From assembly GCA_002269645.1 (NCBI GenBank), contig NIVC01002256.1, forward strand, positions 221,009 through 285,008: a stretch of DNA of 64,000 nt. The letters are read 5' to 3'. The stretch's first letter is position 1. Each line of letters begins with the position of its first letter. This DNA is from Macrostomum lignano. Its lineage: Eukaryota. The notes beneath the pieces are model-generated. The model ran no database searches. It was not told the origin of the DNA and worked only from the letters and a program-made list of their open reading frames with translations. A program made the translations under genes and the position numbers. Positions 9,013-41,891 of this stretch are shown here, one piece after another.

Positions 9013-12000
9013 ATTTTTTTCTGTCAATTCAGTAACTTTGAGGTACCAATATATTAAAAATATAATAGATTATTTGGTCACCAATACTTTTATCTGATGA
9101 TGCAAGTACTATACTTTTATCTATAGTTTGTTTCAACCTTCCAAAGCTTTCTATTTGTTTTTAAAAGGTACACAAACTTATTGATGTCTTTTGCTTAGAA
9201 AAATGTCTAAATTTTTACAAAAATGACTTTTTGCCACTTGATAGCATACTAATCTAACATTTTATCATTCATTTATTCTTAGATTGTAGATATTACACAT
9301 AAAAAAACATTTGGTAAAAAAAATGGCTGATAAGGCAATGGCAAGCAAAAATATTGACTTTTTTCTATTTTCCAAAAATGTCCATCTTATATGGAATGAG
9401 CCATTATGATGGTGATTGGTGACTCTACTAGTAGACAATAACCTGCAGCACCACATGCGCACTCATAAGTGTTAATTTGAAATCAAGTGCAAGCTAACAG
9501 GCTCAAGTCAAACTAAAAGGATTTCTAAGAGTTAAAGTAGTAAAACCAATTAAATTGTTCAGCAGAAAGAAGAAGAAAAAGGAAGGTAGACAGGATAGGA
9601 AGGCATAAAATTGAGCAACGCTAGTAAGCACCATTAAATAAAAGTTAGAGAGCAGAAAGTGGACAAAGGAGGACAAAGCATGGATGCCAAAAACCAAAAC
9701 ACGGAAACAAAATTTTACTGTAGAAAAACAAAGGAAAGGAAAAAAATAACTAGACAGAAGACATACAAAACCAGGAAAATGAGCAAGGAGGCCAAGCCTA
9801 GGAACCAAGAATATGACAAAATTTCGTCGAAGGAAGCACCTTATGATGGACAGATTGGGCCAACCTGGGTAATAGAAAAAGAGGGGAAGATCACATGGGT
9901 CATTCTGAAATTATTAATAGTAAATTGAAAATAAGAAAATTAAATTGTTAGTGATAGTCCCCACTACCACAGGCTTGGGGAAGCCGTACTGATGAAAAGA
10001 AAATGGATCTCTTGGTCCTCAATGGTATCCTTGTTGCTGGGCTGGGGCTTGGCCTCCTTGGTTAGCTAGCTGAGTGCCGCAGGTTGGACCATTGTCCATG
10101 GCAGTCAAGCCAGCTGTTGGCAGGGCTGATGTTGACTACGCTTTGGCCTTGGCTGAGCTAGCAATCTAGGCACACTCACAGAGCTGCTCTAGCAAGTGCA
10201 CAAACTGGCAGGTGATCAAGTGGTCAATAGTCACAGCAAGCAGGGTGCAGCATAGCCAAAGCTGCTGGCCTTTGGTCTTAGAGCCAAGTTGGGCTGCAGT
10301 TGAGACGGCTGCTATCTCAATGGCTAAATCCACTGCTGCCAGGTTGTACTGCTGGGCCAGCTGCGACCAGTTTTTGCAGTTGCTAGATGTCAGCAACTGA
10401 TGCCAGCCTCTCCTTTACTTCTAGCAACAATAGCTTGGCAAGCTAAAAGGCAATCTCCTCCAGTTCACTTGTTGGGGCGCCAAGGGGCTCTATCGGGAAG
10501 CTGCCAGCATATCGGAGCTAGACCTGCTAGTCCACATTGCAGGCAGTGGAGGCAGTGTGAGGTGGTGGTTGGGCTCTAGCAGTCATATAGAGTCCGGCTC
10601 AGGGGCCAGCGGGAAGGTGTGCAACATGGTCCATGAGGCCGTTGAGCCAAGGGCCAGGCATATACAGAGCCTCCAAGGGCTTGGGATAGCCATTGGCTAG
10701 GTCCATTGTGTCTATCAGGACCAGGTCAAGTGATTCGCAGCCTCCACTCACTATCACTCTATCAGGTTGTTGTCTTCAACTGGTTGCTGCATAGTGATGT
10801 CGCTTGGGCGAGCAGTCGCAGCAATAGCAGATAAGCAAAAGGGACCAATGTACAAAGGGATTTATAAACAATTTGGGCTTAGTAGACAATGAATGCAATA
10901 TAGATTAATTATACAGCTTGTCACAGAAGTTAAATCAGAGTTAACAAATTCACAATCTGCGCTGTGTCCTTTTCGCCAATATCGTTGAGATGAATGACTG
11001 GTGGCCCATTGTCTTGGATTTCTAATTGCTCATAAAATGCTAATAAATTCCCTTTGTCTCTTGTCATGTAGGTTGATCACCATAGCAATGGCAGAGTCAG
11101 CACACTGATGGATCTGGAGCTCCTCGCAGGTGACTGGCCTTGGGATATGATCTGTTAGATTCAGAGTTCAGCGTCTGTCAGTAGGATTTGTTGGTGCAGC
11201 TTTGGCTGTTGTGGCATGGTTTGGGGTCTGGAGCTCCCTCTGCATGATTGCTACTTAGACCAGTTGCCAGATTGTTGTTGTGTCCGAAGGTTGTTCCTCC
11301 TCAATAGCTTCGGTGTCACTGTCATTAGGTTTAGATTTGTCAGCAGATGATGATGATGAGGCATCTGAGCTGTCAGCATTGCTGCTGAACCTCACTTTCT
11401 TCTTGAACTTACCTGGTAGGGCAGCAAGTGGGTTGGCAGCAGTTATCTCTGGCTGCACTGTGGTTGCTGTCTGTGTCACATTCAGCTAGTAGTTGGCAGC
11501 TCCTAGTATGAACCACTTTTCATTGGTTTGGGATATTAGATTCTGGGCTCAATTGTTGGGGCAAACTAGGGGAGCTGAGGAGATAAAGCAAGAGAGGGAA
11601 AGGAAGGCAGCAAGCTTAGGGAGCAGGCAGAAAAAGGGAGGCAAGGCTAAGCTTCATTCACACCAAATGTTGGAATATATGTTATTTCTATAATGCATTT
11701 GATTGATGTTTGTTATATGCAATAGGATCTTTATTGCTACACAAGCATGTGTTATACTTTCCTGATAGAAAAACCATCTAAAATTGCATTAGGCTAAAAT
11801 AGCATTCAGGCATAACATGCTTGCCTTAAATTAAGATCATTTTATTGGAATCAAGAATATTCTGCCAAGCACGTTATAAATATATGCCAAGCACTCAGCC
11901 AATAACTAAGTGTCCTTTTGGTTCGTTTTCTTACTTATTCCTCTTAGCCAAATATCTTTAAACAAACAGCTACTTTCATGCCTCATTTATTTAAATTACA

Positions 12001-18422: not shown

Positions 18423-21400
18423 TCACACGGCTCTGCTACGCTGGGGTGCCACTTGGTTTTTGTTGCTGGATTCCGAACTGTAGATCACCAGGGAGCCGAC
18501 GACCAGGAGGAGCTGAAAATTGTATTTTTCAGGGATTTTTTGAAGTTTACAACTTATCACAAGGTATTTGTAATCGCTGACCCAATGATTCCCTGATCAT
18601 ATGACCCACTGACGCTATGAACCACTGACCCTATGAACCACTGACCCTATGAACCACTGACCCACTGACCCTATGAACCACTGACCCACTGACCCTATGA
18701 ACCACTGACCAACTGACCCTATGAACCACTGACCCTATGAACCACTGACCCTATGAACCACTGACCCTATGAACCACTGACCCACTGACCCTATGAACCA
18801 CTGACCCTATGACCCACTGATAATATGACCCACTAACCCAATGACCTACTGACCCTATGACTCACTGATCATATAAACCACTGACCCTATGAACCACTGA
18901 CCCCATGAACCACTGACCCACTGACCCTATGAACCACTGACCCTATGACCCACTGATAATATGACCCACTAACCCAATGACCTACTGACCCTATGACTCA
19001 CTGATCATATAAACCACTGACCCTATGAACCACTGACCCTATGAACCACTGACCCCATGAACCACTGACCCACTGACCCTATGAACCACTGACTTTATGA
19101 CCCACCGATCCAATGACGCAATGACGTGACTTATAAAATTTATCCCAATGAACCATTAGCATTCCATAAAACTACTCTGGCTAACCTGCAGCACCAGAAG
19201 GCCAGCCAACGCGGGAAACAGGTAATTAAGGAAATATTTGTCAATATAGCCAGTAAACAAGGTGTCATAGCAACCAATTCGGTAGTTGCTATCCGTGTTG
19301 TTGTAGGGGCAGTAGAGATTTAGCGGTTCCATTCGAGCTAAGTCGAATTTACAGCAGGTCACCGGGTAAGTTAAGTCTGCAATTTTTATCATTTTGTTTT
19401 TTTGTTTTAAGCGTATTTGCCTACTGTTTCAGTTTAGTAGCAACATAAAAGTATTTAGATAAAATTTGCGCTGAAAAGTTAGAGCAAGAACTTACTGAAA
19501 GTGAAATTTCTGCCGCCCTGACTGATGAAGTGCTGCCTGTCCCAGTCCTGGCTGAGGTTCTCAAAGTCTGTGCCATTGTTCACTCCGCAGCAGCCAACAA
19601 GTATCTGCAGCATATTCTGCAGGAGGCTCTCTAAGTTTGTGCTCCGGAATCCTTTGTACTTAGCGACACTTTGCTCCATGGCCGATTTGGCTGAAGCTTT
19701 TAGCTGCGGATTTTGGGAATTCGGTCAGTAATGCACTGATAGTGAGTCACTGTGATAGTCATCGATGCACTAATAATAATCATGAGTCACTGTGATGAGT
19801 CATCGATGCACTAATAATAATCATGAGTCACTGTGACGAGTCACCGATGCACTAATAATAATTGTGTCATTGTGATGAGTCACCGATGCACTAATAATAA
19901 TTGTGTCATTGTGATGAGTCACCGATGCACTAATAATAATTGCGTCACTGTGATGAGTCACCGATGCACTAATACAATGGTTGTCGTGGGTCGCACAACA
20001 AATTTAGTTAACGAACCCGGATTCACCGCCATAGCTCATATTGATATGCTAATCAAGACGTCAATATCTAAGGTGTCCTTGTAGCAGCCAGATTTAACCT
20101 GGCGTCAGTATTTTTACAGCGTACCTTATCAAATTGGCAATGTTGATAAGATAACAGTCTCCGCCTCAATGTCCTGTTGTGTTGCTTTTTTCTTGCTTTT
20201 TTCTTTCTTTTTTGTTTATCGAAAGGCTCAATGCCGATAAAAAAGTCTTGTGTGTGATTGTCACTCCATGCATTTAAACAGTTATGGTTAATGGAGGATA
20301 GAGACTCGACTCACAATTTCTGAGTTGGCGTACCAGATAATGACAACGATTAGCTGGCCAAGGAATACTAGCCCGACGATTATGGCGTACTGAAGTTAGA
20401 AATGTGACAGTTAGAAATTTGCTTAGATTGCTTGATTCAGGACTCGGGACATGGGACTCGGGACATGGGACTCGGGACATGGGACTCGGGACATGGGACT
20501 CGGGACATGGGACTCGGGACATGGGACTCGGGACATGGGACTCGGGACATGGGACTCGGGACATGGGACTCGGGACATGGGACTCGGGACATGGGACTCG
20601 GGACATGGGACTCGGGACATGGGACTCGGGACATGGGACTCGGGACATGGGACTCGGCAGTTCTAAAAAGTCAGCTCTCACAATGAGGAGACACTGCCGA
20701 ATTTTGCAGCAGCCCCCGATACAGCCGAGACAGGCCACTGCGAGAATGACCACCCCAGCCACAATGAAGGCGGCGCCAACGGATCCGGTCAGCTGACCGA
20801 TGCTGCTCAGCAACTGCTGAATCTCAATTTCTTGACCTGTCTGAGACTTCAGCAAATCCGAAATCGTCTTGAGCCAGTCCTGCACAGAGTCATTCGAGCT
20901 TAGCCAGTTCAGGCCAACGGTGAACACGAGACCCAGCGCGAACAGCAGCAGGCCTACGAGCTGTGAGAGTTCGAGTTGAATTAAAGTAGATTGAATTTGG
21001 CTGAGCCAGCATAGCAACCAGAGCTCTAACAGCATAGCGACCAGCGTCACAAACAGCATAGCAACCAGAGCTCCAACAGCATAGCAACCAGCCCTACAAA
21101 CAGCATAGCAACCAGCCCTACAAAACGGCATAGCAACCAGCCCTACAAACAGCATAGCAACCAGCCCTAAAAACAGCATAGCAACCATGCAGCCCTACAA
21201 AACGGCATAGCAACCAGCCCTACAAACAGCATAGCAACCAGCCCTACAAACAGCATAGCAACCAGCCCTACAAACAGCATAGCAACCAGCCCTAAAAACA
21301 GCATAGCAACCAGCCCTACAAACAGCATAGCAACCAGCCCTACAAACAGCATAGCAACCAGCCCTGAAAAAACAGCATAGCAACCAGCCCTAAAAACAGC

Positions 21401-21753
21401 ATAGCAACCAGCCCTACAAACAGCATAGCAACCAGCCCTACAAACAGCATAGCAACCAGCCCTAAAAACAGCATAGCAACCAGCCCTAAAAACAGCATAG
21501 CAACCAGCCCTAAAAACAGCATAGCAACCAGCCCTACAAAACGGCATAGCAACCAGCCCTACAAAACAGCATACATGTAGCAACCAGCCCTACAAACAGC
21601 ATAGCAACCAGCCCTACAAACAGCATAGCAACCAGGTGCCGCAGGAAATAAAAACAGCACAAAAACTTCCCAGCTCACAATGGCAAAGTTGTTGACGGTC
21701 ACCAGCAGGCAGGCGCAGAGGCAGCTGCAGCATTTCAGCCCAAAGTTCGACAT
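18423..21753 (-). CDS. Tetraspanin A, ~305 aa, six exons
   Basis: Exons 21753-21679, 20960-20682, 20389-20315, 19703-19496, 19376-19186 and 18512-18423; phases 0,0,0,1,0; all GT..AG and the frame is open. Four hydrophobic TM segments. EC2 has GCCGVNNGTDF, YPVTCC, YCP and GCY. Cys-rich N-terminus (KCCSCLCAC). Confidence 0.92.
18590..19110. repeat. Tandem array, ~16 bp unit (CCCTATGAACCACTGA), in tetraspanin A intron 5
   Basis: Directly visible. Confidence 0.93.
19730..19975. repeat. Tandem array, ~39 bp unit (GAGTCACCGATGCACTAATAATAATTGTGTCATTGTGAT), in tetraspanin A intron 3
   Basis: About 6 copies. Confidence 0.9.
20441..20657. repeat. Near-perfect tandem array, 14 bp unit (GGGACTCGGGACAT), in tetraspanin A intron 2
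   Basis: About 15 essentially identical copies. Confidence 0.97.
21008..21633. repeat. Tandem array, ~24 bp unit (AGCATAGCAACCAGCCCTACAAAC), in tetraspanin A intron 1
   Basis: About 25 copies filling almost the whole intron. Confidence 0.97.
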
Positions 21754-26591: not shown

Positions 26592-27055
26592 TTGATAGTT
26601 TTATCTCTGAAATTGCACCCTTTGATTTAATTCCGTAAAAATAATAATGAACTTTTAAGTAAAGTATAAGAAAAAGCAACTAAGTGTAGCTAACATCTTA
26701 AATTTAACAGTTTTTATTATGTATTTTACGTACTTTTTCCATATAAAAAGTAATCATTTTATCAGCTAAATTCTGCAGTTTGACTTAATTTTGTTTGTGT
26801 AAATATATATTTTAAAACCGACAACTTTGGGTCGATTTCATAACGACGACGACGATCCATAGTTAGTTAAGCCCACTTGCTTTCCTTCTTTTTCAGCCTT
26901 AAGATTTTTGAACTAGAAAAACCAATGTTTAAAACCGTTTCTATCAACAAGCAAGAAAATTACGCGTAAAAGGAGAAAGCGTGTAAATTTGAGGGTGATC
27001 CTTTGCCCTTCTGTAAGTAGTTTCATGCCTGGACATGCACATTTCATTTTAAAAT

Positions 27056-30000
27056 GGCAGTGCTTATCCCCACGGTACCGTAGGAATAATTTCTGTCTTA
27101 TTCCAACGGTACCGTGGGAATAATTTTCTGCTTATCCGCACGGCACACTGACGAGATAGCTGCCCCATCTTCTACATATGCCGTGGGGATAATTTTCTGC
27201 TTATCCGCACGGCACACTGACAAGATAGGGCGAATTGTTGAAGCAATGCAATAATCTATACAAGCAAATTGCTAATTTACATGTTTAGTAGAAGTCTACA
27301 ACAGAAGTGGCAATGCACTTTTCGGTATGATCTCCGGGGTCGTTCTCAAAGCTAGGTCACAACTTTTTGTTATTGCAAAAAAAGTTTATACATCGACCAA
27401 TAATCGTACAAAAAAAATTCTTTTGACAATTTCTGTAAGAAGCTGCTACTAAAACCACAAGAAAACTTGAAATTGAGAAGAAATCAAGGCTATTTGTTAT
27501 TCTTTGTTGCGGAAAATAAACGACAAAAATATTAAAGAGAAAATAAAATTTTCTTCCATTTTTATTTTAAATATGCAGTTAAATTTCTTTTGCAAAAATA
27601 AAAGAACAAGAAATTGACAAAGGAAATGTTTTTGAGCACAGCATTTTGTTACTCTGCTCCAAATCCCAGACATTTAAAATTATCGTGTGCGAAAAAGTGC
27701 GAAATTATTATAGCATGCACTCGAAAGAACTTCGATCAGTTTAACTAATCACTGAATTGAGAAGTCTAAATAAGTCTTGAAAGGTTGAATTAAAAATCAA
27801 GTTTTCACTATGTATCTTTTCAAAGGCAAGATGATTCGACAAATAAAGAATGTTCATTTTTACCTTGAATAGAATTGTTCATTTTTACATTAAATATAAT
27901 AAAATCTAACTAATAATAGAAAAAGTCAGGGAACTATCCTTGAACACCAAAAAGCACATTGTGGATTTAATATCGACTGCATGTTCCTTAATAAAGGAAT
28001 TCAGATACTAGTATATATTTGATTATTTGTAGCATAATTTCTGAAAACTATAACTTGCTTGATTTTACTTTAAGTACTCATTACATTAATACTTATACCA
28101 AAGCTACATGTACTTAAAATAAAAAATCATAGTTACTTATTAGACATTTTACTCCAATTAACCTAAAATAATTCAAATTTATTTTAATTAATTCATTTTT
28201 TGAAACTTTTTGGAAAATAGACAAAATTGAATTATTTAAATACCAAAAACCTACTAGCTTAACTAAAATAGCAATTAGTCTTTAAGAAAAGATTTCACTT
28301 GTTAATTGAGAAAAATGAGGATGTGCGAGGTGTAAAAATGCGAAAGAGCATGCAGGAAACAGAGACAAACAAAAATGTAGGTAATAGACACTGCACATGC
28401 ACATAATATGATAACCAGACATAATGCGCACACTGAAACACCAGTAGCAATGACGCCCAAGCTTTTGATGATCACAAGCGAAAAGGCAAAACCCAGCCAT
28501 CAATCAAAGAAGTAGACTATAGCACACATCTTGAGTGCATCACGCATTTTTTGCAGAGAAGCTCGAAAATTAACATTGTATTCTGTGCACAACCACCAAC
28601 TGCGACAGGGTCTGCCGGGGGATTTGTGGGCACGCGGTCGCGGATACAAATCGGAGGAGTCGCTGACCATTCTGAAATTACTAGCTAGTACATGTAATTT
28701 TGTGTATTAATATATTTAGCCCGCTTTATTTCTATGCTCTCGTCTGCCTCTCGTTAATGCATCCCCAGACTCATGCAATAATCAAACTTATGATCGAACT
28801 ATGCATGGCTTCCGTCCCTCGCTTTGAATCTCTCACCTCCCCATAGTTCCATCAACCTTACCGTAGTGGCTTCCTATGCAAAAATCATCCCTCCGCATCT
28901 TACACAGGCTACTTCAGGCTGTAGACTGTACTACACTATTAATTAGTTGCGCTAAGGAATCTACATGTATTTGCTCGCAGCGCAGCGCGCTGCTCAAAGA
29001 AGTTTAGATCTGTCTAGATATTCTAGTAATTTCAGGTTTGTCCATAGACTAGAGCTCATGAGATGAGAATTCCATTAACTAGTACGTTTAATGTAGGATT
29101 CATACATCGATTTTGCGTGCTTAAATGGTCTATGCACGAGTGCGCGCAGCGTGTGTGTGTGCTGTGCATACATATGTATAATATACGAGTAGTTTATGGG
29201 CCAAATTATTGTGTGGCACAATTCTTGGCATCACTCAGCAGGCACAAGATGCAGTTAAGCAGCGCACGAAAATTCTACAAAAGAAATTGAGCCTGGTTGA
29301 GGTGATGCGAGGAGGCAGATCCACACAATCTCAGTGAATACACCAGACTGCACCAAATACGAGTCCAGTCGAATGTGCGCACTGGTCTAAGCAGCACACG
29401 CATGTCCTCCTGACAATGACGGCACCTAGCTTCGTCCAAGCCTTTGCCAGCGTCACTGACAGCGTCAATACTACCATGCAGTGCCACCTGCAGCACCGAC
29501 AACGGCAATTCCTCCAGTTAGCCCACAACAGTGGCTAAACTGAGGGACAGGGAACCTACCCGCAGAAGACACACACATACACACACAGCACCGGCAGCAG
29601 CACTCTGACAGCATAACCTAAAGCTCCATGAGCTCAGTTTTCAAGCATTGAAGAAGCAGAAGCAGTCATCTTGAATCCAGGGATCAGGAAGAGTGTTGCA
29701 TGTCCGACATGTGCTGTTTCCGTGGCAAAAGGTGATGGAGCAAATTAATCAACACTTACTATCTAGCTCGTATTAAGACTAAAAAACTGAGGCAAGCTGG
29801 GATTAAACCAAAGAAAATTTTTTACTATACTTTTTTACCATATACTTTTACTATACTTCTATAGTATAGTAGAGAGGTACTCTATTTAAATGCAGTAAGA
29901 AGTGAAACAAATTTATATATTTAATTATTAAATTAAATTAATTCAAGGTAAATAACTAATTTAACCAATTTATTAGGAGTATTTAATATTATAATAAATT

Positions 30001-31525
30001 GATTTTTATACCTTACACGAAATAAGCTCTACATTCATTTCTTAGCTTGGGGCCCATCTGTATAAGGTCAGTTTCTTCAAAATGCTGATTAATTAATTAA
30101 GGCCTGTTGTCTTTACTTAAATTTATAAGGGCATCTTAGAAGTTAATATTACTATATAATACATGTATAATATTATTACTATATTATAATAATATAGTTG
30201 CAATTTTAATGACTATTGAATAAGTCTAAATGCTTCCCCTATTGACTCTAAATACATGGTATCTTTCCCTTCAGAAAAAATTAGCATAGAATGACTTGAT
30301 GAAAACAAAAAAAATCATTTCGAGATACACATTTGCTGATCATTCAGGTCAAATTTCAAGGTCCAGTTTTGCACATGTTTCTCTGTAGCTTGGTTACAAG
30401 GATTCTAATAAAAATATAATAAATATGTCCAATGAACTAACTGATACATAGCCAAATTGAAGTATTTTCAAAAACAAAAAAAATCATTTGCTCAGTTTAC
30501 TTTACTGGATATCTGTGTAAAATTTCAGCTCAAAAGGTGCTCCATGGAGAATGCTAGTGTGGTTACAGGATATGTATTTTGTGCTTCAAAGTAGGAGTTT
30601 ATTGCGATGCATGGTTGCTTTTAATTATTTTTATCAACAATAGTGCTCTATTTCATAACAATTTTTTACAAAAAGATAATAAGACATGTTTTTCTAATTA
30701 TCTGCATCAAAATGTATCATTTTAAGCGCACATTCTAGACGTCAGCTGAAAAATACATTTTGTGAGACGCAAAGAGGCTATCCCACCGGAAATGCTAGGC
30801 GCACAGTTAAGCGTCTATAAAATCATTTATAGTGCAGTTTATTAAGCTTTAAAAAAAATCTTAAATTAAATTTATATAAGCTTTCATTTTAAATGTAATA
30901 TAGCAAGTTTTCAACACAACAACAACTTTTTTAGCTACAGACATCATAGTGTCAAAAATTAGGACATCGGTGAAGTGATTGAATTTGAATTTTTTCATCA
31001 CCTAATATCGCCTAATACCGCAAGACAACTTAAAACACTTTTGCAACATAAATTTCAACCCAAAAATTATCTTTATTCACAGATGAAAGTGTCCTATTAT
31101 TTTCAATACGGCAGTAACAATAGTAAATGTTCCGAAAATTGTTAAAATTTTCGCTCCTCCCAGAATTTGAGAACGACCCTCCGGATTATACTTTGCTAAA
31201 AATTCAAATTATAAACAATTACTAGGCCAGGACCTAAAGCAATTTACCTTGGCTTAAATTATACGTCATAAATACAAAAAAGAGTTTTTGCATAAAAAGG
31301 CAATTAAATCTTTACTTCTCTAAAACTAATGGCCAAGCAAAGTTATGTTGTTATACTGCACTTAAACCATAAGTACTAAATTATTCCCACCGTCCTACGG
31401 CATATGTAGAAGATAGGGCAGCTATCTCGTCAGTGTGCTGTGCGGATAAGCAGAAAATTATCCCCACAGTACCGTTGGAATAAGACAGAAATTATTCCTA
31501 CGGTACCGTGGGAATAAGCACTGCC
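27056..31525. mobile_element. Non-autonomous Mutator/MULE-like DNA transposon, ~4.47 kb
   Basis: TIRs of ~130 bp (27056-27186 and 31395-31525) with only a few mismatches. GGC..GCC termini. Exact 9-bp direct repeat TTTTAAAAT at 27047-27055 and 31526-31534. No transposase ORF seen inside. Confidence 0.85.
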
Positions 31526-33339
31526 TTTTAAAATTGGCATTATTTGATTGCCTGTCTGGAATATAAATTATGCATTATCTTTTTTAGCTAGAGAATTCTT
31601 CTTATAAATTCATAATTGCCTTTTAATTTTACTCTTAAGCTGAGGCAGGCTGCTAGTGTTACTGCTAGGCCTATTACTACTATTAGTAAAGTATTAAAGT
31701 TGCCTAATAGTATTATTATTATTAGACATGAAGGTATAATATTTATTTTATTATGACATTAGGCTTTAAAGTTTAAATTAGGGTATTAAGCCTAAGTATT
31801 TTAGATATATCTATCAAGTGCTTTGTAAAAGTTTAGTAAAGGCTTTAGTCTTTAGAATTTAGAACTTTTCTAACAATACAATAGTGCATAATATTCTATT
31901 GTAGGCCTATCCTTACATTTAATTATTTGCTTTGAAATTTTAGTTACTATTTAGTTTATTGATAAATACTATAATAGATTTAATAGAAAGATTAATTAAG
32001 TTTAACAGATAAATTGATAATTATCAACTAGTAAAACTGGTAAATGGAAATCTTAGGCCTATAAATAAAGAGTTGTGCAATAAAACAGCAATAAAAATGT
32101 TGTGGATATAGGTAAATAGGCAGACATGGTTTTAAGTGTATTTACCAATAATGTTTTTGAGTAAATGAGTCTACTGCATTTGATTTGCACTGACTCTATA
32201 GTCAGGAAGATAGCCTTTTTCATGGAAAATTTAGGAGTAAAAAGGGGTTAGATATGCACTGTGCCAGCACAATATGGCACAAGAAAAAAAATTGCACTTT
32301 TTGTGCAAGACAAAATCTTATGACCAGACAATATTTTCTCTAATAGAAAATTAGCATGTAATTTATTTTTATTGGCATTTTTTGTTTGCCAGTGTATTGA
32401 GAGCTTTTTTAATTAATTTATGTAAACTTAGCATTTTCCATGAAAGAGATTCAAATACAAGTTTTATTAGTATTTTTCAAATGGCAAATTATTGATTTTT
32501 GCATTTTTTTCAAAAAGTTATAGTACATGTAGTGCAATCAAACTTTTTTGATAGGATTTGTTCTGGCATAGGCATGCTATGATCTTGACTATGGCACTGA
32601 CTGGCAATGGCCATTGACTAAGTCTACCTATCTAGTAGGCAGTCACAAGCATTTTATCTATTGTCTTTTCATTTCTTGATATAAAAATATATACTTTATA
32701 ACAAAAGAAATTAATTTTAGTTCCATCCATATACTAAAAATAGTCCATTGATATCTATCTAAGTAAGGTAGGTAGATATATTATTAATTAGAAAAAAATG
32801 GCTTAACCAGTTTTCTCCAAACTTGCACTATTCAATTAGATTTTTTTCTGTAATGGTACATTGATTGTGGCTAAGAAATTGCTCAATGTTAAAGGGATTA
32901 AATATTCAAAAACATGCTTTTTGCAACTTTTCAAGCAAGGTCAAGCAACTTTTCAACTTTATTGTATTGTAAGAATACTAAAGAAAAAACTGACTGGCCA
33001 AATTCTAATTGCGATAAAGGTTGCATTATACTAGTCTTTTTATTGTCTGTGTACTGACTGAATTTTTACTCTGAATTGAATTGTGTCAATGTTGAAAAGA
33101 CACAACAGTGTAGAAGCATAGCATAAGACTTGATTTAGATCACATTATTAATTGACAACTTTACTTGAAACTGATTTGGTATAAGTGTCAAATTATAAAT
33201 GCTGCAATTCGTTTAATAAATTCAACAAGAGCTAGCCTAGATGTGAACAAATTGAAATGCTAATGCAAAAACCTAGGTTCAAATCTTACTGATGTAAATT
33301 TTTTATTAAAAGCTTTTCTTAAAGAATTTATTGAAAACA

Positions 33340-34130
33340 ATGATTATTGCACTTGATGAGAAATGGATTGTTACACTAGCTGAGACATGGATTATTGCCA
33401 TTGATGTATAAAGGATTACTGCACTTTGAGTTGATAAGACAATGATTATTGCACTTTATGAGTAAAGGATTATTGCACTTGATGAGACATTGATTATTGC
33501 ACTTTATGAGTAAAGGATTATTGCACTAGCTAAGTCATGAATTGTTACATTTGATGAGCAAATGATTATTGCACTTGCTGAGATATCAATTATTGCATTT
33601 AATAAGACAATGATTATTGCACTAGATAAGTAAAATATTATTGCACTAGATAGAAAAAAATTATTACACTGTACTGACTGGAAAAAAACTATTGCATTAG
33701 CTAAGACATATATTATTAAATTACCTGAGAAAGTGATTATTGCATTAGCCAAGGAAATAGTTGCACTAGCTATCTGGTAGGTGCTTGCTATCTGGTAGGT
33801 ACTTGCTATCTGGTAGATATTTGCTATCTAGAGGATGCTTGATATTTGGGGGTTGCTTGCTATTTTATTTGCGGTGAGGGTACTTCTTATTGTATTTGGA
33901 TAGGAGGATGCTTGCTATCAAAGTATGCTTGCTATCTGGGCATGCTTGCTTTTGGGGGTGCTTACTATTAGGGGATGCTTGATATTGGGGAGACACGAGG
34001 CTTGCTCTTGGGGAGAGGGGATACTTGCTAATCTGGGGAATGTTTGCTATCTAGGAGGATGCTTGCTATCTAGGTTAATTTCTATCTGGGGGATGCTTGC
34101 TGTCTTGGGGATGTTTTCTATTTAGGGGAA
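33340..34130. repeat. Two adjacent old, degenerate tandem arrays (GATTATTGCACT core, then ATGCTTGCTATCTGG core)
   Basis: Recurrent cores at irregular spacing; the switch is at ~33770. Confidence 0.75.
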
Positions 34131-37100
34131 AGGCTTTCTATTTTTGTGAAGGCCTAATATTGTTGTCTTGTTATTTTTATTAAATAAGGTGATTTATAAA
34201 ACTGAAGAAATAACTTTAATTGTTCTTAAGAAAATGTTCTTTTAAATAGACTTGCATGAAAATTTTTTGATTCTTGCTTATTGGGTGGCCCAAAGGGGGC
34301 ACTAGATTGCTAGTAATTCTATGGCTTACTTTTCATAACACAATTTATGAGTTATACAAAAATTTATAGTTATATATCATTTTTATATGTAGTTTTATTT
34401 GTCACATATTTTAGACAAATGGGATAGCCCATTGTATAATATTTAAATATCAGGAAAAGTGGTTGTTGCAGTTTAGGCTATTAGTTTATTATTGCTATGC
34501 TTTGTAGATTTACTAGGTTTAGTTGGTAGGTCATTGCCACTAATCACTAACATCCTAGTATGTTAGTGATTAAAGAACTGTCAAGACACCAATGTAGTAT
34601 TTTTAATTCAACACAAACTTTTAAAAGAAAGAAAAGAAACATTATGATACAAAAGAGTGGTTTGTTACATTAATTCCCCTTTTACCTTAAATTTTTCTAA
34701 GTGCTTGGGCAAGACTCCTAGTGAGAGGCAAGATTCCTCTTTGTGCATTCTAACTCTATTCCCCTACCCCCTTTACCTTTAACTTCCTTAAATTCTGAGT
34801 TGAGTTGCAGAATGTAGCATAGGTGTTCAGGTAGGCTTTGTTTTCCCAGGAGCCCAACTGTTCTATATTAGTAAAGAGCCCAAAAATTTGTGGTTTACCA
34901 CTGCCATAATTACCTTCATAAATAAATAAATAAATAATATATAAATAAAAGCATATTTATCCTGTGTCTAGATTCTGCCCCTAAACTATGCCCTCCTACA
35001 TATCTAATAAGAAGACCATTTTAATTTTAACCAATCTTCTAGTTCCCAGTGAGCGGAGCGAACGCGCGAGGCACAAAGTGCCGAGCATGAGGAACAAACA
35101 GCCAGCCAATGCGCGAAGCGCATTGGGTGGTCTGGCTTGTGACGAATATAATAATATGAGACGTGTGCATCGAAAAAATGACAAGAAAAATCTCACAAAA
35201 ACTGCTGTAACTTCAAAACTACAAGTGCGAATTTCACAAGTGAGGTGTCATTTTAAAGAGAAGAATCTGATCTATTTAACGAGTATAGTTTTGTATGGAT
35301 TCACTGCGGAGAAAAGGAACAGGCTTCAGTTGAAATGTTTGTCTTAAGATTATGTCTTTACAAAAGTGCATTTCCTCATGCACATTAAAACTCGAGCTAA
35401 AAATGTTCGAGGGTTATAGGTGCGCCTTACTAAGATGCATAACATTATTGGGTTGTTTTTTTCAATTGTATCAAAAAGTTGGCACTTTGGTTGCAAAAAA
35501 TGCAAAAATTGAAAATGTACTTTTACAGTTTTTTGCATTTTTTTCTATACTGCTAATAGTTAAGCATACATACTATGCACCAATTGATGCGCAATTCAAA
35601 GATACACAAGTGTGGAAGTTTTCAATTCTTAAACATTTGAAATCAGAAAGTTATCGATGAAAGACTAAAAATCATGATCTCAAACTGATTTGAGGAAAAG
35701 TGCTCATTATAATTTTTGGAATATGGAAGAAACAATTCAACGCCGTCATCTAATTCCAAACTAACTGTACTTTAAGGTACTGCGATGATTTTTTTATTGA
35801 AAGAGCGAAACCTGTTTAAATATTTGAAAAATGGAAAAAAAGTACATTTTTTCATAGAAATACACTCTTTTGACTGCTTAATCCGATTTCCAACAACAAA
35901 ATAGTTGCTTTCCTGCTGGTGCAAACCGTTATTACAGTGAATTTTCAAAATTGCATACTGTGCCAAAAGTAAACTGAAGCTTAATATTTATAAACATTAG
36001 AAACGGGACCACTAATGGGTATTTTACTTTGGTTACTTACTATGGACTAAACTGGCACTGGCAGAGACAGATTTGAGAGAAACTAATTGCTCCATTGTAT
36101 TTGTATTTGGCTCCAGCGTTACAAATTACAATAGCTATTTCGGGGTCTAACCGGCTAAGTTATCAAAAAAGCTAGATACCAATCACCAGTTTCATCATCA
36201 GCTATACCTACCACGATTTTATAGTCACATGCAACAGTAATACCCTCCTTTAAAAGTTTTCAATATCTAAAATGATGTGTTAAATTTTATAAAATTTCAT
36301 AAACAGTGAAATTTTAGCTGTTTACGTGCTGGTGGTTTGAACGTAGCTACTTTGTGCGAAAATACACTGTCATTAATACCGTACCTATTATTGTATTTAT
36401 TGTATTGAAAGTTGATGTGTAAATTGTACTTTTCTATTTTTTTGTCATTCGTTATCGCACTCGGGCCGGCCTGCCTGCCTTGTGGGGTGTGGTGGCCTTG
36501 GCCACTTTCTCCCCCTTCTGCTAGGATCCAAAGCAAGCTTTCAAGTGTACATTTAATATTATCGATCGATTATTTAAAACAAGCCTCTAGTGGCTGGTGT
36601 TGAGAGTGAGTGGCCTTGAGTGTACGCGAAAGCAAGAGGAAGCCCATGGGCGGACTATATGAACCTTCCTTTAGTGGAAAGTTGGGCCTTGTGCATTGGA
36701 TAGTGTACGCTACACAAGACAGAAGGTAAAGAAAAAGAGAACGACAGGCTAGCCAATAGCGATAGCATGTGCTTCTTTCTCTCCAGTCCACTATGGTAGG
36801 GGGGGGAGGGGGGTGTCAGACGGCCCAACTCTAACCCCCATACCCAAAACAGCGTACATGTAGAATAAGAAGGGATTGGGTCCAGATAAGTCTTCCCAAA
36901 TGTACATGTATGTACAAAGACAAACACAGACAAGAAAAATGGCTCTAAAAACCATTGTTATTGTTACACTGTGTGTCTATTTTTATTAACTTGACTTTGA
37001 CTTGTCTTTACTCTAGCATGGTCAAGGTCTCAAGGATAATTACTGTTACTTCATACCAAATTTACAATTAATTGCATAAGATTAAGAAGGAATAATACAA

Positions 37101-37315
37101 TCGAGGTCGAACCCATGATCACTTGACCCACCCACCCATGATCACTTCTGATTCTGACCTACATGTATCTACTATATCCTGCCAGTTTCTCCAGTTTTAT
37201 GGGTCTTGGTGTCGGTGATTCGAGCAATTCCATTACATTTTATCGGTGCAGTGCGTCTATTAATGCTTAGCTACTTGTATATGTGTTGCAGAACTTATGC
37301 TCGTAGTTTCCCTTC

Positions 37316-38093
37316 TAGGGATGTTGACCCCGGGAGTGCTCCCCGGGGAGCTTGTCGGGGAATACTCTCCGGGGAATTTAACCGGGGACCCTGGGGAGAA
37401 AAAATATGAAAAAATGCATTTGTAACTTAATTTTTGCCATTAAAATAAGAAACTGATTCACAGAAAGCTGATTGAAACTCTGTCTATGCTCTTTTACCGC
37501 ATAATTGCTTATTTCAATGCATTACATGTATTTGAAACACAACACACGTTTGATTGTTTTTTCACTAATAAGTCATTCAATCAAGCAAATTGCACGTAGA
37601 AAAGAAACCCGTCAGGAAAAAGAAGCCTTACTGACTAGTGACTGCTGTGTTGGTCTGCGTTGACGGCTTGACGCAGGCGCAGCGCTGCGTCATGCGTCAG
37701 GCACTGACGCATAGGGGGGTGTCATACATATACTCCCTATTAGACAAGGACAAAATGGTGATTTACATATATATGCAAGAAATAAAATTCCGATTATAAA
37801 AACAGTCTCATTCATTAATTATCCTCTCACGAGCGTAGCTGTTTAGCATGCATTCCAACAAATGCACTTTTCCGATAAAGGTGCGCGCACGATTTCGTGA
37901 TGCCACATTGTCAAATACAGTTTAAAAAACATTGTTTAAAATTTTTACCCCTGCGCCTTGAACATGTAGTACAAAGCTTAAATCAAAGTTTAAAAAATTC
38001 CACTTACAATTTAAGTGCTCCGCCGTTTTTACTTATTTTTTCTTTCACCGGGGTCCCCGATAAGATAATTCCCTGGGGAATCGACATCCCTAA
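37316..38093. mobile_element. hAT-like MITE, ~780 bp
   Basis: Termini TAGGGATG..CATCCCTA(A). Degenerate inverted subterminal blocks (CCGGGGACCC / GGGTCCCCG). The 8-bp direct repeat TTCCCTTC lies at 37308-37315 and 38094-38101, with a one-base offset at the right end. Confidence 0.65.
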
Positions 38094-39017
38094 TTCCCTT
38101 CCTATAAATCATTTGACGTTAGAGACATTTTACAACTCTCGCCCTACTTTATCTATTAGGCTAACTTTATGTATGACACGACGCAAAATATTAGGAGCAT
38201 CAGCGTTAATAATGCCTTGAAAGTCTTTAAATAATCGATACAACACTAGGTATTATAAAATTCCAACCCCAAAGCTCACTGGGGCGAAAAGACTTTGTCT
38301 TCATTAACTAGTCCATAAAAACTCAATGTCCTTAATTGGATGATTTATTGTTTATAATTTATCTGTTAGGCTTATATTTAATAGATGATTGACAGATAGC
38401 CAGGTTAATAAAAATATAAACAAAAAATTATGGTAACTATTTTTTTGGATATGCATTTCTAATAACATTAGTTGCTAGTTATCACTAATATTAAAAAAGA
38501 GTTTATCTATTGCTATCTCATTCTAATATCATAATGCTAATGTTGTATCAAATATTTTGTGGCAGACAAAAAAGTGGCAGATGAACTGACAGACATCAAC
38601 CATAAGTCTTATATGTACCCCATATTGACTAACCACTGACTAAGTCGACCTATCCTCACCCAACTCTCAGACTTGGTGCCATAGAAATTTTCTAGCTTTA
38701 AAGCTTTTTTAAGAGAAACTCGAGTCTATTGGGTTATAGACTTAACCAATAGACATGTATGCTACCATATGCATATTGTGTACTTCCATATTGGAATAAG
38801 TTTGAAAAATCTATAGGCATGCAGCATAGACCACAAAAATAGCCCAAAAGTGCAACAAATTAATAGAAGCATTAAAATACACTGCATAAAAGCATAACAC
38901 AAACACTGAAGATGAAATGAAAAGTGTTTCGATGAGGGCCTATGTTATTTTACTTCTTAAATTATTTTATAATAACTCATTTGCTGAAAAAGCCATAATG
39001 TGGCACAGCCCACACAC

Positions 39018-39146
39018 ATGAATCACTCCCCATCATCTGCCCCGCAGGTGGACACATCGGCAGAGCCGCCTGAGTGCCTGCCGGCGCTAGTGCTAGCTGA
39101 TCACAATCGAGTCCCACCTTGGGACCCTGATCCGTTTGGCACTTGA
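39018..39146 (+). promoter_or_regulatory. Candidate regulatory upstream ORF (uCC-like) with PPW motif, 5' of the ODC-like gene
   Basis: Reads MNHSPSSAPQVDTSAEPPECLPALVLADHNRVPPWDPDPFGT*, with PPWDP at 39114-39128 and the stop at 39144-39146, 185 nt before the main ATG. A CAG acceptor at 39045-39047 could instead join it to an upstream exon. Confidence 0.7.
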
Positions 39147-39330
39147 ACTCTGGATTGTTGACTTTTTTCTGTTTTTTTAGTGTTTCCTCTTAAATATTTT
39201 ATTGCCTCCATTGTCTGTCGCAATCAATCAGATTTAATTTTTTATACGCATCATATACATGTCATACTACTAACAAAGACTTGATTTAGATCAGCAGCAA
39301 GTCTAGCGTTGTTTTTGTGTTATTTGCCTG

Positions 39331-41891
39331 ATGAGAGAATCGCAACTGGAGCATCAGCAGCCTCAGCAGCAGCACCTGCTCTCAGCCCCAACACCGGCAG
39401 TTTGTCCACCAATTGGCTGCGCTCTGGCGCCTCACCTGCCCAATCTTGAGCAATGCGATCAGCCGGTTGTGGCCTGCGACTTGGCCAGCGCCCAGCGCTG
39501 TCTGGCCGACTGGTGCAGCCGGTTTCCTGGCGTGCACGCGTCAACCAGCGCCCAGACTCTGGGCAGCCGGCCACTGACCCACGTGTTGGCTCTCAGCGGC
39601 CGCGTGTCCTTTCGGGCCTACTCTAAGGTGAGGCTGACGGTTAAAATAACCTGTCTTTGACCTTATTTGCTATAGTAATAATAGTAGTAATTGAAGCAAT
39701 TCAGAGTTAAGTGTCTTGCTCAAAGACACACAAATATTATTCCGAGTTGACCCGACGTGTACTTCGCCCACGTTACTTGACCTTAATTGCCCAAATTGAC
39801 CTTTATTGTCCCAATCGACCATAATTGTCCCAATTGACCTTGACCATAATTGTCCCACTTGACCTTGACCATAATTGTCCCACTTGACCTTCAATTGTCC
39901 CAATTGACCTTCAATTGTCCCAATTGACCTTCAATTGTCCCAATTGACCTTCAATTGTCCCAATTGACCTTCAATTGTCCCAATTGACCTTCAATTGTCC
40001 CAATTGACCTTCAATTGTCCCAATTGACCTTCAATTGTCCCAATTGACCTTGATTGAGCAGTCCGACCTGAACGCTGCTGTCTCCGCCGGAGTCCCGGGC
40101 CACGCCATCCTGCTGGCCAACCCGTGCAAAACTCGCGGCCTGGCCAGGCACGCCCGTCGCCTTGGCGTCGGCGTCACCGTATTCGACTCGGAGCCGGAGC
40201 TGGCCCGCCTAGCCGCGGCTTGGCCGGACGTCGAGCTGCTGCTTCTGCTGGCCGCATCGCCCCGCTGCCACCGGCTGGGCGCCCGGCCCGAAGAGGCGCC
40301 CCGCCTGCTGGCCGCCGCCAGACGCCACGGACTGCGAGTTGCCGGCGTAGCCGTCTGGTTCGGCGACGACAACGAATGCGAGGGCGACGGTGGCGGCGAG
40401 GTCAACTCCGACGTCGACGCCGAGTGGGCTGCTGCCGCGTCGACCGCCTGCGGTACTCTGGCCTTGGCCAGGCGTCTCGGCCATGCCAATGCCAATGTTG
40501 TCGACCTCGGATGTCTGTCCACCGGCGCCTTGGCCGGGCGGGCCCTGCCGGCCTTTGCGAACGCTGCCGGTGAGGCTTTTTATATTTTCCATTATAGTAA
40601 GAGAGTTATTTTTATACGTCAAAATTAGAATTCTTATATAATGCTACTGTAGAATTATTGTAACTACTCGTATTTTGCCTAACTTTATTAAAAACAAATG
40701 TTGGTTTGCGGCATAATTTTTTGAGAGTAAAATGAGTGTGATTCTGAATAATGCGATTTTTATGAAATCACCAATTAAAATTAACAGGCTATTAATATAA
40801 AAAAGCTGTAAATACTACGCTTGCTACAGCGTCACAACAATAATACAGGGTATTTCTTTGCAAACATTTAAGCCTTTAAAACCATTCTTAGAAACGAAGT
40901 AATTTTTATAACGTTTTTCGAGCGGTTTCTCTCAAAATGCCTGCCTTAATAGGTATTGGAAACGGTGGCTGTCAGCCTCGTCTACTCTGCGACCTGACTC
41001 CGGCGTTGCTAGCCGAATCCGTTGTCATGGCAACCAGGGTGTTGGCTAAAGCGGCGGCCGAGCAGCCAGGCTGTGGCGGCTACAGCTACCGGCTCAGCGG
41101 CCCGGGCCTCGGCGGCCAACTTTGCGGCCTCTTCAGCCGTGAGGGCGAGGGCGGCGGCTGCAGCGGCAGCAGAGACGGCGTGCCAAGCCGACTGGCCGAC
41201 TGCGGCGGCGACCCGTTGAACCTCGTGCTGCCAGAGCTCAGCGTCGGTGACTGGTTGCTATGGCGCGGCCTGAGGGCCTGTCCGACCGCTGCCAGGCTGA
41301 TGCACTGGTGAGCCGTGGCAGTTTTTTAATTCTAAGAGTGGCTTCGAATTCGGCTTTTCTTCCTGGAAATTTACATGTGCTGTCTTGAACTTTGCTAGAA
41401 CTTTTTTACTTAGAACTTTAGAATTTCCCTTCGAACTTTAGGAGTTCATTCTTGAGATATCCCTTCCAACTTTAAAGTTCATTCTTGGGATTTCCCTTCC
41501 AACTTTAAAGTTCATTCTTGGGATTTCCCTTCCAACTTTAAAGTTCATTCTTGGGATTTCCCTTCCAACTTTAAAGTTCATTCTTTGAATTTCCCTTTCA
41601 ACTTTAAAGTTCATTCTTGGGATTTCCCTTGAACTTTAAAGTTCGCTCTTGGGATTTCCCTTCCAACTTGAAAGTTTATTATTGAGATTTCCCTTCTAAC
41701 TTTAAAGTTTATTCTTTAAATTTAAAATTTATATATTGGATTTTTTAGTATTCCCCTATCGATACTGTTAACTTCGCGATGTTCAAATTCTATTTTCAAT
41801 TTCCCTAATCGTTTGCAGCCTCTTCACCGGCGAGCTGATGGAGACAAAGCCCGCAGCTTGTCTGGATGAGGAGCCGCTGCCGGCTGCTTAA
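39331..41891 (+). CDS. Ornithine-decarboxylase-fold protein lacking catalytic residues (antizyme-inhibitor-like), ~410 aa
   Basis: Exons 39331-39627, 40062-40569, 40953-41307 and 41819-41891; phases 0,1,2; open frame. ODC-family motifs include VVACDL..DW..RFPGV, GVPGHAILLANPCK, GVGVTVFDSEPELARL, LRVAGV, VVDLG and LPELSVGDWLLW. Confidence 0.88.
39780..40050. repeat. Tandem array, 20 bp unit (CAATTGTCCCAATTGACCTT), in ODC-like intron 1
   Basis: Ends ~10 nt before the AG at 40060-40061. Confidence 0.95.
41440..41710. repeat. Tandem array, 33 bp unit (GGGATTTCCCTTCCAACTTTAAAGTTCATTCTT), in ODC-like intron 3
   Basis: About 8 copies; the unit contains the 12-bp palindrome AACTTTAAAGTT. Confidence 0.92.

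Follow-up and report, generated by a model that had tools for sequence, protein, structure and literature searches.

Does the leader of an ornithine decarboxylase (ODC) homologue that has apparently lost its catalysis hold a polyamine sensor in the flatworm Macrostomum lignano, and from which exons would that sensor be built? The question is raised by a short open reading frame (ORF) on the plus strand of contig NIVC01002256.1, at 39018-39146 of the stretch analysed here (the window, 64,000 nucleotides long, whose own numbering is used throughout). An earlier note on this DNA had read it as an upstream ORF (uORF) with a C-terminal Pro-Pro-Trp (PPW) motif, possibly starting from the AUG at 39018 and repressing an antizyme decoy. 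Our analysis points to a differently delimited unit. With a probability of about 0.7, the leader carries a uCC (upstream conserved coding region) made up of 50 AUG-less codons, assembled by splicing, likely started at an AUU and acting as the polyamine-sensing leader of the dead ODC paralogue; the sensor function taken by itself, which draws on analogy with known uCCs, is if anything slightly more probable.

The ORF at 39018-39146 encodes MNHSPSSAPQVDTSAEPPECLPALVLADHNRVPPWDPDPFGT, ending in ...DHNRVPPWDPDPFGT before the stop codon at 39144-39146, and is separated by 184 nt from the main ATG at 39331, which lies in a different frame. Its GC content is 0.60, against 0.34 in the preceding 500 nt and 0.32 in the next 184 nt; the ATG at 39018 has a C at -3 and an A at +4, and a CAG occurs within the ORF at 39045-39047. 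Coordinates, composition and start context all agree with the previous description of a GC-rich short ORF in an AT-rich leader ahead of an ODC-fold gene. The window as a whole is eukaryotic, with GC-rich exons within AT-rich DNA.

Exons and intron of the upstream coding region

Two protein relatives of the ODC-like product, 65% (P0003) and 83% (P0002) identical to it, come from assembled RNA-seq runs. The transcript contigs L001 and L002 have a 426-nt leader that is free of any AUG and contains ...KKITRKKRKRINTRVLLSPFVDASSSEPPDSPKRSVGGDHNRIPPWDPDP before a stop; across the splice junction their uCC reads ...KKITRKKRKRINTRVLLSPF joined to VDASSSEPP...DHNRIPPWDPDP and the stop. The 3' part of this uCC matches the window from 39048 on, and its 5' part maps to 26938-27021, where 30 of 31 nt are identical around AAAATTACGCG (AUUACG). 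The similarity to the orthologue ends exactly at the CAG acceptor and restarts 12 kb upstream at a GTAAGT donor. More specifically, the orthologue junction ...CCCTTTT/GTGGACGCA corresponds in the window to ...CCCTTCT/gtaagt...cag/GTGGACACA at 27012/39048, a junction in phase 0 that keeps the frame. The window therefore contains a 5' leader exon at about 26925-27012, 12 kb upstream of the exon-2 part, and the whole uCC, counted from the AUU, has 50 codons with no in-frame AUG. The parts of the leader are as follows:

26925-26969, plus strand: uORF1, a 14-codon AUG uORF encoding MFKTVSINKQENYA and a stop; weak context (C at -3, T at +4); UAA at 26967-26969
26956-26974, plus strand: invariant nucleotide block AAAATTnCGCGTAAAAnGA, the same in all 5 leaders
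26959-27012, plus strand: exon-1 part of the uCC; AUU candidate start at 26959-26961 (A at -3), then ITRKRRKRVNLRVILCPS
27013-39047, plus strand: uCC intron of 12,035 nt, phase 0; GTAAGT donor, pyrimidine-rich ...ctgccccgCAG acceptor
39048-39146, plus strand: exon-2 part of the uCC, VDTSAEPPECLPALVLADHNRVPPWDPDPFGT and the stop
39099-39134, plus strand: invariant peptide core DHNRVPPWDPDP; PPW codons at 39114-39122, which are uCC codons 41-43
39147-39330, plus strand: AT-rich spacer of 184 nt from the uCC stop to the main AUG

Because the orthologue transcripts join the upstream exon directly to the CAG acceptor at 39047, the ATG at 39018 falls inside the 12,035-nt intron and is probably intronic. 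The uORF as delimited from this AUG is thus not retained; its first 10 codons lie upstream of the acceptor and most likely outside the translated unit. The other option raised before, that the CAG connects the ORF with an exon further upstream that provides a non-AUG start, is the one that the relatives' transcripts bear out, with the exon 12 kb away. These transcripts also place the uCC in the mature mRNA of the relatives, upstream of the ODC-like ORF, in L001 and L002 as well as in L006-L011. The same intron position is found in a second paralogue (6453/9783 of the genomic sequence L012 against the transcript L006), and the UniProt model P0160 begins exactly at VDTSAEPP, that is at 39048, which fits an exon boundary at this position in M. 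lignano itself. No ORF of at least 120 aa was found within the intron (27013-39047).

Three other arrangements were considered and rejected. Spliced-leader trans-splicing at 39047 is not supported, as the relatives' contigs share no common 5' sequence and show cis-splicing. The uCC is not an N-terminal extension of the main ORF, since the two are read in different frames and every genomic and transcript sequence has a stop. For L010 and L011, a programmed frameshift that would lead ribosomes out of the uCC into the main ORF fails because the main ORF lies in the -1 frame with respect to the uCC, and the +1 frame is closed some 50 codons on.

Existing gene models have to be corrected at this point. 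NCBI models omit the uCC. Four UniProt models of M. lignano (P0160, P0010, P0157 and P0158) start at the first codon past the uCC acceptor (VDTSAEPP... or AVKDPEPP...) and join the uCC with the ODC-like ORF by way of three or four invented and mutually inconsistent introns (L012, region 9783-10012); these fusions are apparently ORF-maximising artefacts of a uCC without AUG. The uCC intron also carries an insertion of 4.46 kb at 27060-31525 that is absent from the two other M. lignano genomic copies (L004 and L005) and is flanked by inverted copies of a repeat with a 34-nt period (27061-27137 and 31446-31520); it looks like a transposon with terminal inverted repeats. In the spacer between the uCC and the main AUG, a mini-uORF (MSYY and a stop, 39259-39273) is present in the M. 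lignano copies and absent from the orthologue leader. Upstream of the leader exon, on the minus strand at 20274-21583, there are long low-complexity repeat ORFs (GLVAMLF..., RAGCYAV... and SPMSRVPCPESHVP repeats).

Conservation, start codon and the overlapping uORF1

A full HMMER scan of 1.84 billion representatives brought the second paralogue family to light. Four proteins scored below 1e-30, namely P0002, P0004 and two multi-copy ODC gene models (mite and frog), and the dead-type sequences among the best matches (P0002, P0004, P0007 and P0010) are without exception from M. lignano itself or products of the two relatives' RNA-seq runs. P0010, from the Mlig005245 family of M. lignano, starts with AVKDPEPPDPNRLLTDHNREPPWDPDP... 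This family (genomic L012 and L013; transcripts L006-L011) has the same two-exon uCC plan with the same intron position, a 5' exon ending in ...CCCTTTT/GTAAGT, an acceptor ACAG/GCGGTC and a uCC of 48-55 codons. The uCC is present in two dead-ODC families across three species, with the following peptides, each closed by a stop codon:

M. lignano, paralogue 1: ITRKRRKRVNLRVILCPSVDTSAEPPECLPALVLADHNRVPPWDPDPFGT
species A, paralogue 1: ITRKKRKRINTRVLLSPFVDASSSEPPDSPKRSVGGDHNRIPPWDPDP
M. lignano, paralogue 2: ITRKKKRRRNQRVNQYPFAVKDPEPPDPNRLLTDHNREPPWDPDPTTG
species B, paralogue 2: ...LSDHNSEPPWDPDPTTGRRYC
species A, paralogue 2: IPRKKKRRRSQRVNLYPSADRDPQPPDLVTGASKGSDHNRDPPWDPDPNRSPRG

In all five leaders, PPW stands at codons 39-44 counted from the AUU and 4-12 residues (plus the stop codon) from the uCC end, with the terminal residues PDPFGT, PDP, PDPTTG, PDPTTGRRYC and PDPNRSPRG. 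The amino acids of the core DHNxxPPWDPDP are invariant except for position 4 (R; S in L006) and the variable position 5, and its Pro, Asp, Asn and Arg codons vary synonymously among the leaders. Comparison of the window with L001 gives a dN/dS (omega) of 0.07 over the 12-codon core (three synonymous changes and one non-synonymous) and of 0.34 over the whole uCC. Between species, the nucleotide identity of the uCC is 75-76%, and the spacer from the uCC stop to the main AUG, which is 0-247 nt long depending on the leader, has an identity to the orthologues equal to the shuffle baseline. Synonymous variation under an invariant core, together with flanking leader sequence at shuffle level, indicates that the uCC is under constraint at the level of the peptide, strongest near the C-terminus; conservation extends to the basic N-terminus (RKKRKR) as well as to the C-terminus, which is acidic and rich in proline. 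The earlier note had proposed PPW invariance and a dN/dS below 1 as checks of its uORF, and the uCC passes both.

PPW is a short motif, and it occurs three times in the six-frame translation of the window, two of these within 10 codons of a stop, so that by itself it is not significant here. The PPW ORF of this leader appears to be more than chance because the motif is invariant in five independent ODC-like leaders while the identity of the flanking leader is at shuffle level.

Two further observations concern leaders with PPW. In paralogue 2 of species A (L010 74-238, and L011), the first AUG of the main ORF comes only at about residue 97 of the called protein; the gene call started at a GTG, the main frame and the 3' end of the uCC overlap, and the PPW codons contain a CUG (gccCUGg). 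In L010 and L011, translation of the main ORF may itself begin at a codon other than AUG, beneath the stall site. Positions 1-22 of L010, a Logan contig, read CAGACGTGTGCTCTTCCGATCT, which we take to be Illumina adapter, with the transcript proper beginning after it. Separately, a eukaryotic contig from JGI metatranscriptome 3300006393 (L014, 1-291) encodes an intact ODC (P0008) behind a 242-nt leader without AUG, in which an AUU in GCCGCCAAC-AUU context opens an ORF ...AYHDSNKKPPWATFS... This ORF extends 31 codons beyond PPW and overlaps the main start, and its motif D-x-N-[KR]-x-PPW is similar to the Macrostomum core.

As no spliced uCC leader has an in-frame AUG, we searched for the start among near-cognate codons. 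The AUU at 26959-26961, with an A at -3, is the sole near-cognate codon that is invariant in all five leaders; others vary, such as an ACG that is CCG in L010 and a GTG that is GTT in paralogue 2. The block AAAATTnCGCGTAAAAnGA around this AUU occurs once in the window, against 0 expected. Consistent with this, AUU is the verified start of the AZIN1 uCC (PMC2811004). Translation of the uCC most likely starts at AUU 26959, as judged from this pattern of conservation.

The AUU is overlapped by uORF1, which in all five leaders has 14 codons, a weak-context AUG always 34 nt before the AUU and a UAA always 5 nt past it, in a frame other than that of the uCC (for L001 the AUG was deduced, as the contig begins at its G). 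The alignment from the uORF1 AUG to the exon-1 donor (88 nt) has zero gaps across all sequences. Since the peptide of uORF1 is variable except for the stretch overlapping the invariant block, it is the length and position of uORF1 that are conserved, and not its sequence. No such overlapping uORF was found described for known uCCs in the literature examined. Just after the AUU, two small hairpins are predicted in all five leaders, at 26964-26982 (GCGU...RCGY) and at 26991-27010 (AAGGGU-N8-ACCCUU, at the end of exon 1); their pairs are conserved and none covaries among the five leaders, which adds nothing beyond sequence conservation.

The inactive ODC homologue, the proposed mechanism and its rivals

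The gene behind this leader has four coding exons:

39331-39627, plus strand: main ORF exon 1, match to PAA59525.1
40062-40569, plus strand: main ORF exon 2, NAGNAG acceptor
40953-41307, plus strand: main ORF exon 3, match to PAA59525.1
41819-41891, plus strand: main ORF exon 4 including the stop, match to PAA59525.1

The 410-aa product is identical to M. lignano PAA59525.1 (BOX15_Mlig015075g4; NIVC01002256.1), and two further M. lignano genomic copies, L004 and L005, are ~95-97% identical. It matches Pfam Orn_Arg_deC_N (7e-10), an N-terminal domain and the sole Pfam domain detected, and human ODC structures in PDB (8e-12). At the exon-2 NAGNAG acceptor (40057-40061, gAG/cAG/TCC), the NCBI annotation and the relatives' transcripts use 40062, and a start at 40059 would add one Gln. 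Minisatellites occupy parts of intron 1 (39777-40051, 20 nt in 13.4 copies) and intron 3 (41423-41716, 33 nt in 8.9 copies); they give many offset self-matches against L004 and L005 in BLAST, and their copy number probably differs between the genomic copies.

Residues were numbered on the human ODC sequence, of which 37-193 were confirmed against the PDB alignment. On this numbering, 15 of the 16 catalytic or pyridoxal phosphate (PLP) residues are replaced in both families (K69, D88, E94, R154, H197, S200, G236, G237, E274, G276, R277, D332, C360, D361 and Y389), and Gly235 is retained. All orthologues have K69Q, D88R, R154L, H197W, E274D, R277P and Y389C and have lost C360 and D361; D332S/G is a further replacement. 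Four unrelated control ODCs from the same search keep all 16 residues. The loss of catalysis, already suspected for this protein, is what such replacements predict. The main coding sequences nevertheless evolve under purifying selection (omega 0.13-0.23). D88R, E94D, R154L, E274D and G276T are common to both families and not seen in the controls, and these shared derived substitutions point to one already inactive ancestor of the two families, which are now 34% identical to each other. Descent from the vertebrate AZIN1/AZIN2 duplication was considered and rejected, as the dead-type sequences among the best matches are from M. lignano or the two relatives' runs, AZIN1 in the PDB scores worse than ODC, and the two families have these derived substitutions in common.

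How the leader would work can be proposed from the AZIN1 case, in which PPW stalling, eIF5A and ribosome queuing have been described (PMC2811004, PMC11550727, PMC7397865, PMC8705083, PMC11058473). Most scanning ribosomes would pass over the AUU and reach the main ORF, which they translate. At high polyamine levels, impaired eIF5A would cause the few ribosomes that translate the uCC to stall at Pro-Pro-Trp. The distance from AUU to PPW is ~120-129 nt, about four ribosome lengths, and trailing ribosomes would queue back to the AUU, increase uCC initiation and shut off the main ORF. With its AUG one ribosome length (34 nt) before the AUU, uORF1 would probably gate access to it, either by bypass and reinitiation or as the next position in the queue. 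The dead ODC paralogue would then, in the simplest case, be an inhibitor that sequesters antizyme and arose independently of vertebrate AZIN.

A more specific version of this proposal, which we regard as tentative, is that the leader is not a plain AZIN1-type uCC and works as a two-gate device, in which uORF1 and the AUU at fixed spacing are coupled to flatworm-specific analogues of antizyme inhibitor. In one option, at low polyamine levels uORF1 would let ribosomes skip the AUU and initiate again at the main ORF, as compared with the tiny uORF of plant AdoMetDC; in the other, it would be the next docking site in the queue that builds back from PPW. Across two families whose proteins share only 34% identity, uORF1 has been preserved with not one indel. 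If true, the two-gate leader and the PPWDPDP ending without Pro-Ser would be a natural experiment testing the ribosome-queuing model.

The antizyme-inhibitor role is a separate matter, and given the sensor we consider it an even bet. A polyamine-repressive leader kept on both dead families suggests that their proteins raise polyamine levels, and an antizyme decoy would be the simplest role with this effect. An antizyme gene of M. lignano with a UUU-UGA shift site has been reported (PMC1874602). FDSExEL is retained in the antizyme-binding element (human ODC 117-140), part of which lies in one of the two stretches best conserved with human ODC.

Several points weigh against the proposed explanation as a whole or against its last step. 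The splice in this M. lignano copy is deduced from the orthologues, the paralogue and the gene models that start at the acceptor, and the ATG at 39018 is kept in frame in the other M. lignano copies. The uCC lacks the Pro-Ser-stop ending reported for animal uCCs of six phyla. Of the 12 residues of human ODC that contact antizyme (AZ1; contacts from PMC4595762), only 3 are identical and a further 2 conservatively replaced; the antizyme of flatworms may have changed along with its partner. The AlphaFold2 model built on a three-sequence alignment is poor (mean pLDDT 49). No catalytically intact Macrostomum ODC occurs among the 30 named top matches (mites, frog, choanoflagellate, fungus and metatranscriptome proteins), which reflects the reach of the search and does not speak for absence. 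Finally, dead ODC paralogues of planarians have phenotypes that are independent of putrescine and not AZI-like, and the RNAi results of that study spoke against an AZI role (PMC5574924).

Some of these points feed the strongest rival, a serious contender although below even odds, in which the uCC works as proposed and the dead ODC is not an antizyme inhibitor; it would be a heterodimer subunit (inhibitor or activator) or have a function unrelated to putrescine synthesis, as suggested for planarian ODC5/6. The heterodimer alternative was raised by Ivanov et al. 2010, as quoted in PMC5574924, the low identity at the antizyme contacts favours it, and two dead families as deeply diverged as these suggest sub- or neo-functionalisation. 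On the other side, a polyamine-repressive leader kept for so long on both families fits a protein that raises polyamines, whereas an inhibitor of ODC should be induced by them; FDSExEL lies in a well-conserved stretch, and M. lignano has an antizyme.

Improbable in our estimation is a contiguous uORF from the AUG at 39018, on a transcript that begins in the proposed intron or reads through it. The ATG is in frame in both other M. lignano copies, where a 6-nt indel before the acceptor keeps the frame, but copies that are ~95% identical overall say little by retaining it. No relative or paralogue has an in-frame AUG, P0160 starts at 39048 and not at 39018, and the orthologue similarity breaks off at the acceptor and resumes only at the distant donor. 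Very unlikely is that the conserved ORF acts as a small peptide in trans or as an RNA element, and not as a stalling sensor in cis. Its conserved basic N-terminus and acidic C-terminus, and a start region invariant at the nucleotide level, would be compatible with such roles; the synonymous variation of the PPW core and the lack of covariation in the predicted hairpins speak against RNA, and the position before ODC homologues in two families, the non-AUG start and PPW all match the known cis-acting class. That the ODC-like locus is a pseudogene in decay, with the upstream ORF as a relic, as lost catalytic residues, strong divergence and a single detectable Pfam domain might suggest, is effectively refuted by a main-CDS omega of 0.13-0.23 at dS 0.7-1.2, by intact, transcribed frames in both paralogue families and no fewer than three species, and by the same substitutions being fixed in all members.

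Comparison with known systems

By its sequence features, the element qualifies as a genuine member of the known class of uCCs on ODC homologues, with AZIN1-like ribosome stalling as the expected mode of action. The uCCs of ODC homologues, the PPW, eIF5A and queuing mechanism of AZIN1, and the recurrence of dead ODCs are already established, and the earlier idea of an independently evolved module is not new in kind; the Macrostomum case itself may have been described in the 2008 and 2010 primary papers. As the core idea is known elsewhere, the present results are a confirmation and extension and not a new principle. They extend the AZIN1-type sensor to a basal flatworm amenable to transgenesis, and a sensor kept on two anciently duplicated, fully inactive ODC paralogues speaks for a coupling of their dosage to polyamine levels. 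The invariant spacing of uORF1 AUG, AUU and PPW (34 nt, then about 123 nt) gives concrete predictions for ribosome queuing.

The closest known system is the uCC of vertebrate AZIN1 (Ivanov et al. 2008 PNAS and Ivanov et al. 2018 Mol Cell, as presented in PMC2811004, PMC11058473 and PMC7397865). In both, the leader of an inactive ODC homologue holds a coding region some 50 codons long that lacks an in-frame AUG and has a conserved AUU (purine at -3), Pro-Pro-Trp near the C-terminus (codons 47-49 in mouse, 41-43 in Macrostomum) and constraint on the peptide concentrated at this end. In contrast to AZIN1, the Macrostomum uCC lacks a terminal Pro-Ser-stop; an invariant DPDP comes after PPW, and behind it a tail of 0-8 residues that varies between leaders. 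Its leader has the invariant 14-codon AUG uORF overlapping the AUU, an intron (12 kb in the window) interrupts the uCC, and the dead ODC is part of a lineage specific to flatworms, comprising two paralogue families, and falls outside the vertebrate AZIN1 clade.

More broadly, uCCs precede ODC homologues of animals and fungi (Ivanov et al. 2008, as summarised in PMC2811004), and the Macrostomum uCC shares with them its placement, non-AUG initiation as predicted here and a pair of neighbouring prolines close to the C-terminus. The uCCs of animals make up a single orthologous group, and their Pro-Ser-stop ending, found in six phyla, is described as common and not universal (PMC2811004); unlike in those, the C-terminal PS is absent in Macrostomum. 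Homology of the Macrostomum uCC to the pan-animal one is suggested by shared features and not by alignment.

For the pair formed by uORF1 and the uCC, the nearest analogy, one of anatomy, would be plant AdoMetDC (SAMDC), with its overlapping tiny and small uORFs (Hanfrey et al. 2005, as cited in PMC2811004). In both, a very short AUG uORF overlaps the start of the uORF that senses polyamines (putatively so in Macrostomum), and in such an overlapping pair translating the first uORF would therefore preclude starting the second. The enzyme is a different one, and the plant uORFs both start at AUG and overlap by one nucleotide, whereas in Macrostomum the second would start at AUU and the first ends 5 nt past it.

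On the protein side, catalytically inactive ODC homologues have appeared recurrently, flatworms included (Ivanov, Firth and Atkins 2010 J Mol Evol, as cited in PMC5574924). In the planarian study of Cassella et al. 2017 (PMC5574924), the term 'uORF' has 0 occurrences and uORFs are not mentioned. Like planarian ODC2-6 from that study, the Macrostomum proteins are lineage-specific paralogues with substituted key catalytic residues and proposed regulators (AZI-like or ODC-inhibitory); the planarian proteins have at least one substitution among 18 key residues, whereas those of Macrostomum have lost essentially the whole active site. In conclusion, what distinguishes the Macrostomum leaders from the systems compared here is an ending without Pro-Ser-stop and with an invariant DPDP after PPW, a uCC split by an intron, its presence on two dead families and an overlapping AUG uORF at fixed spacing.

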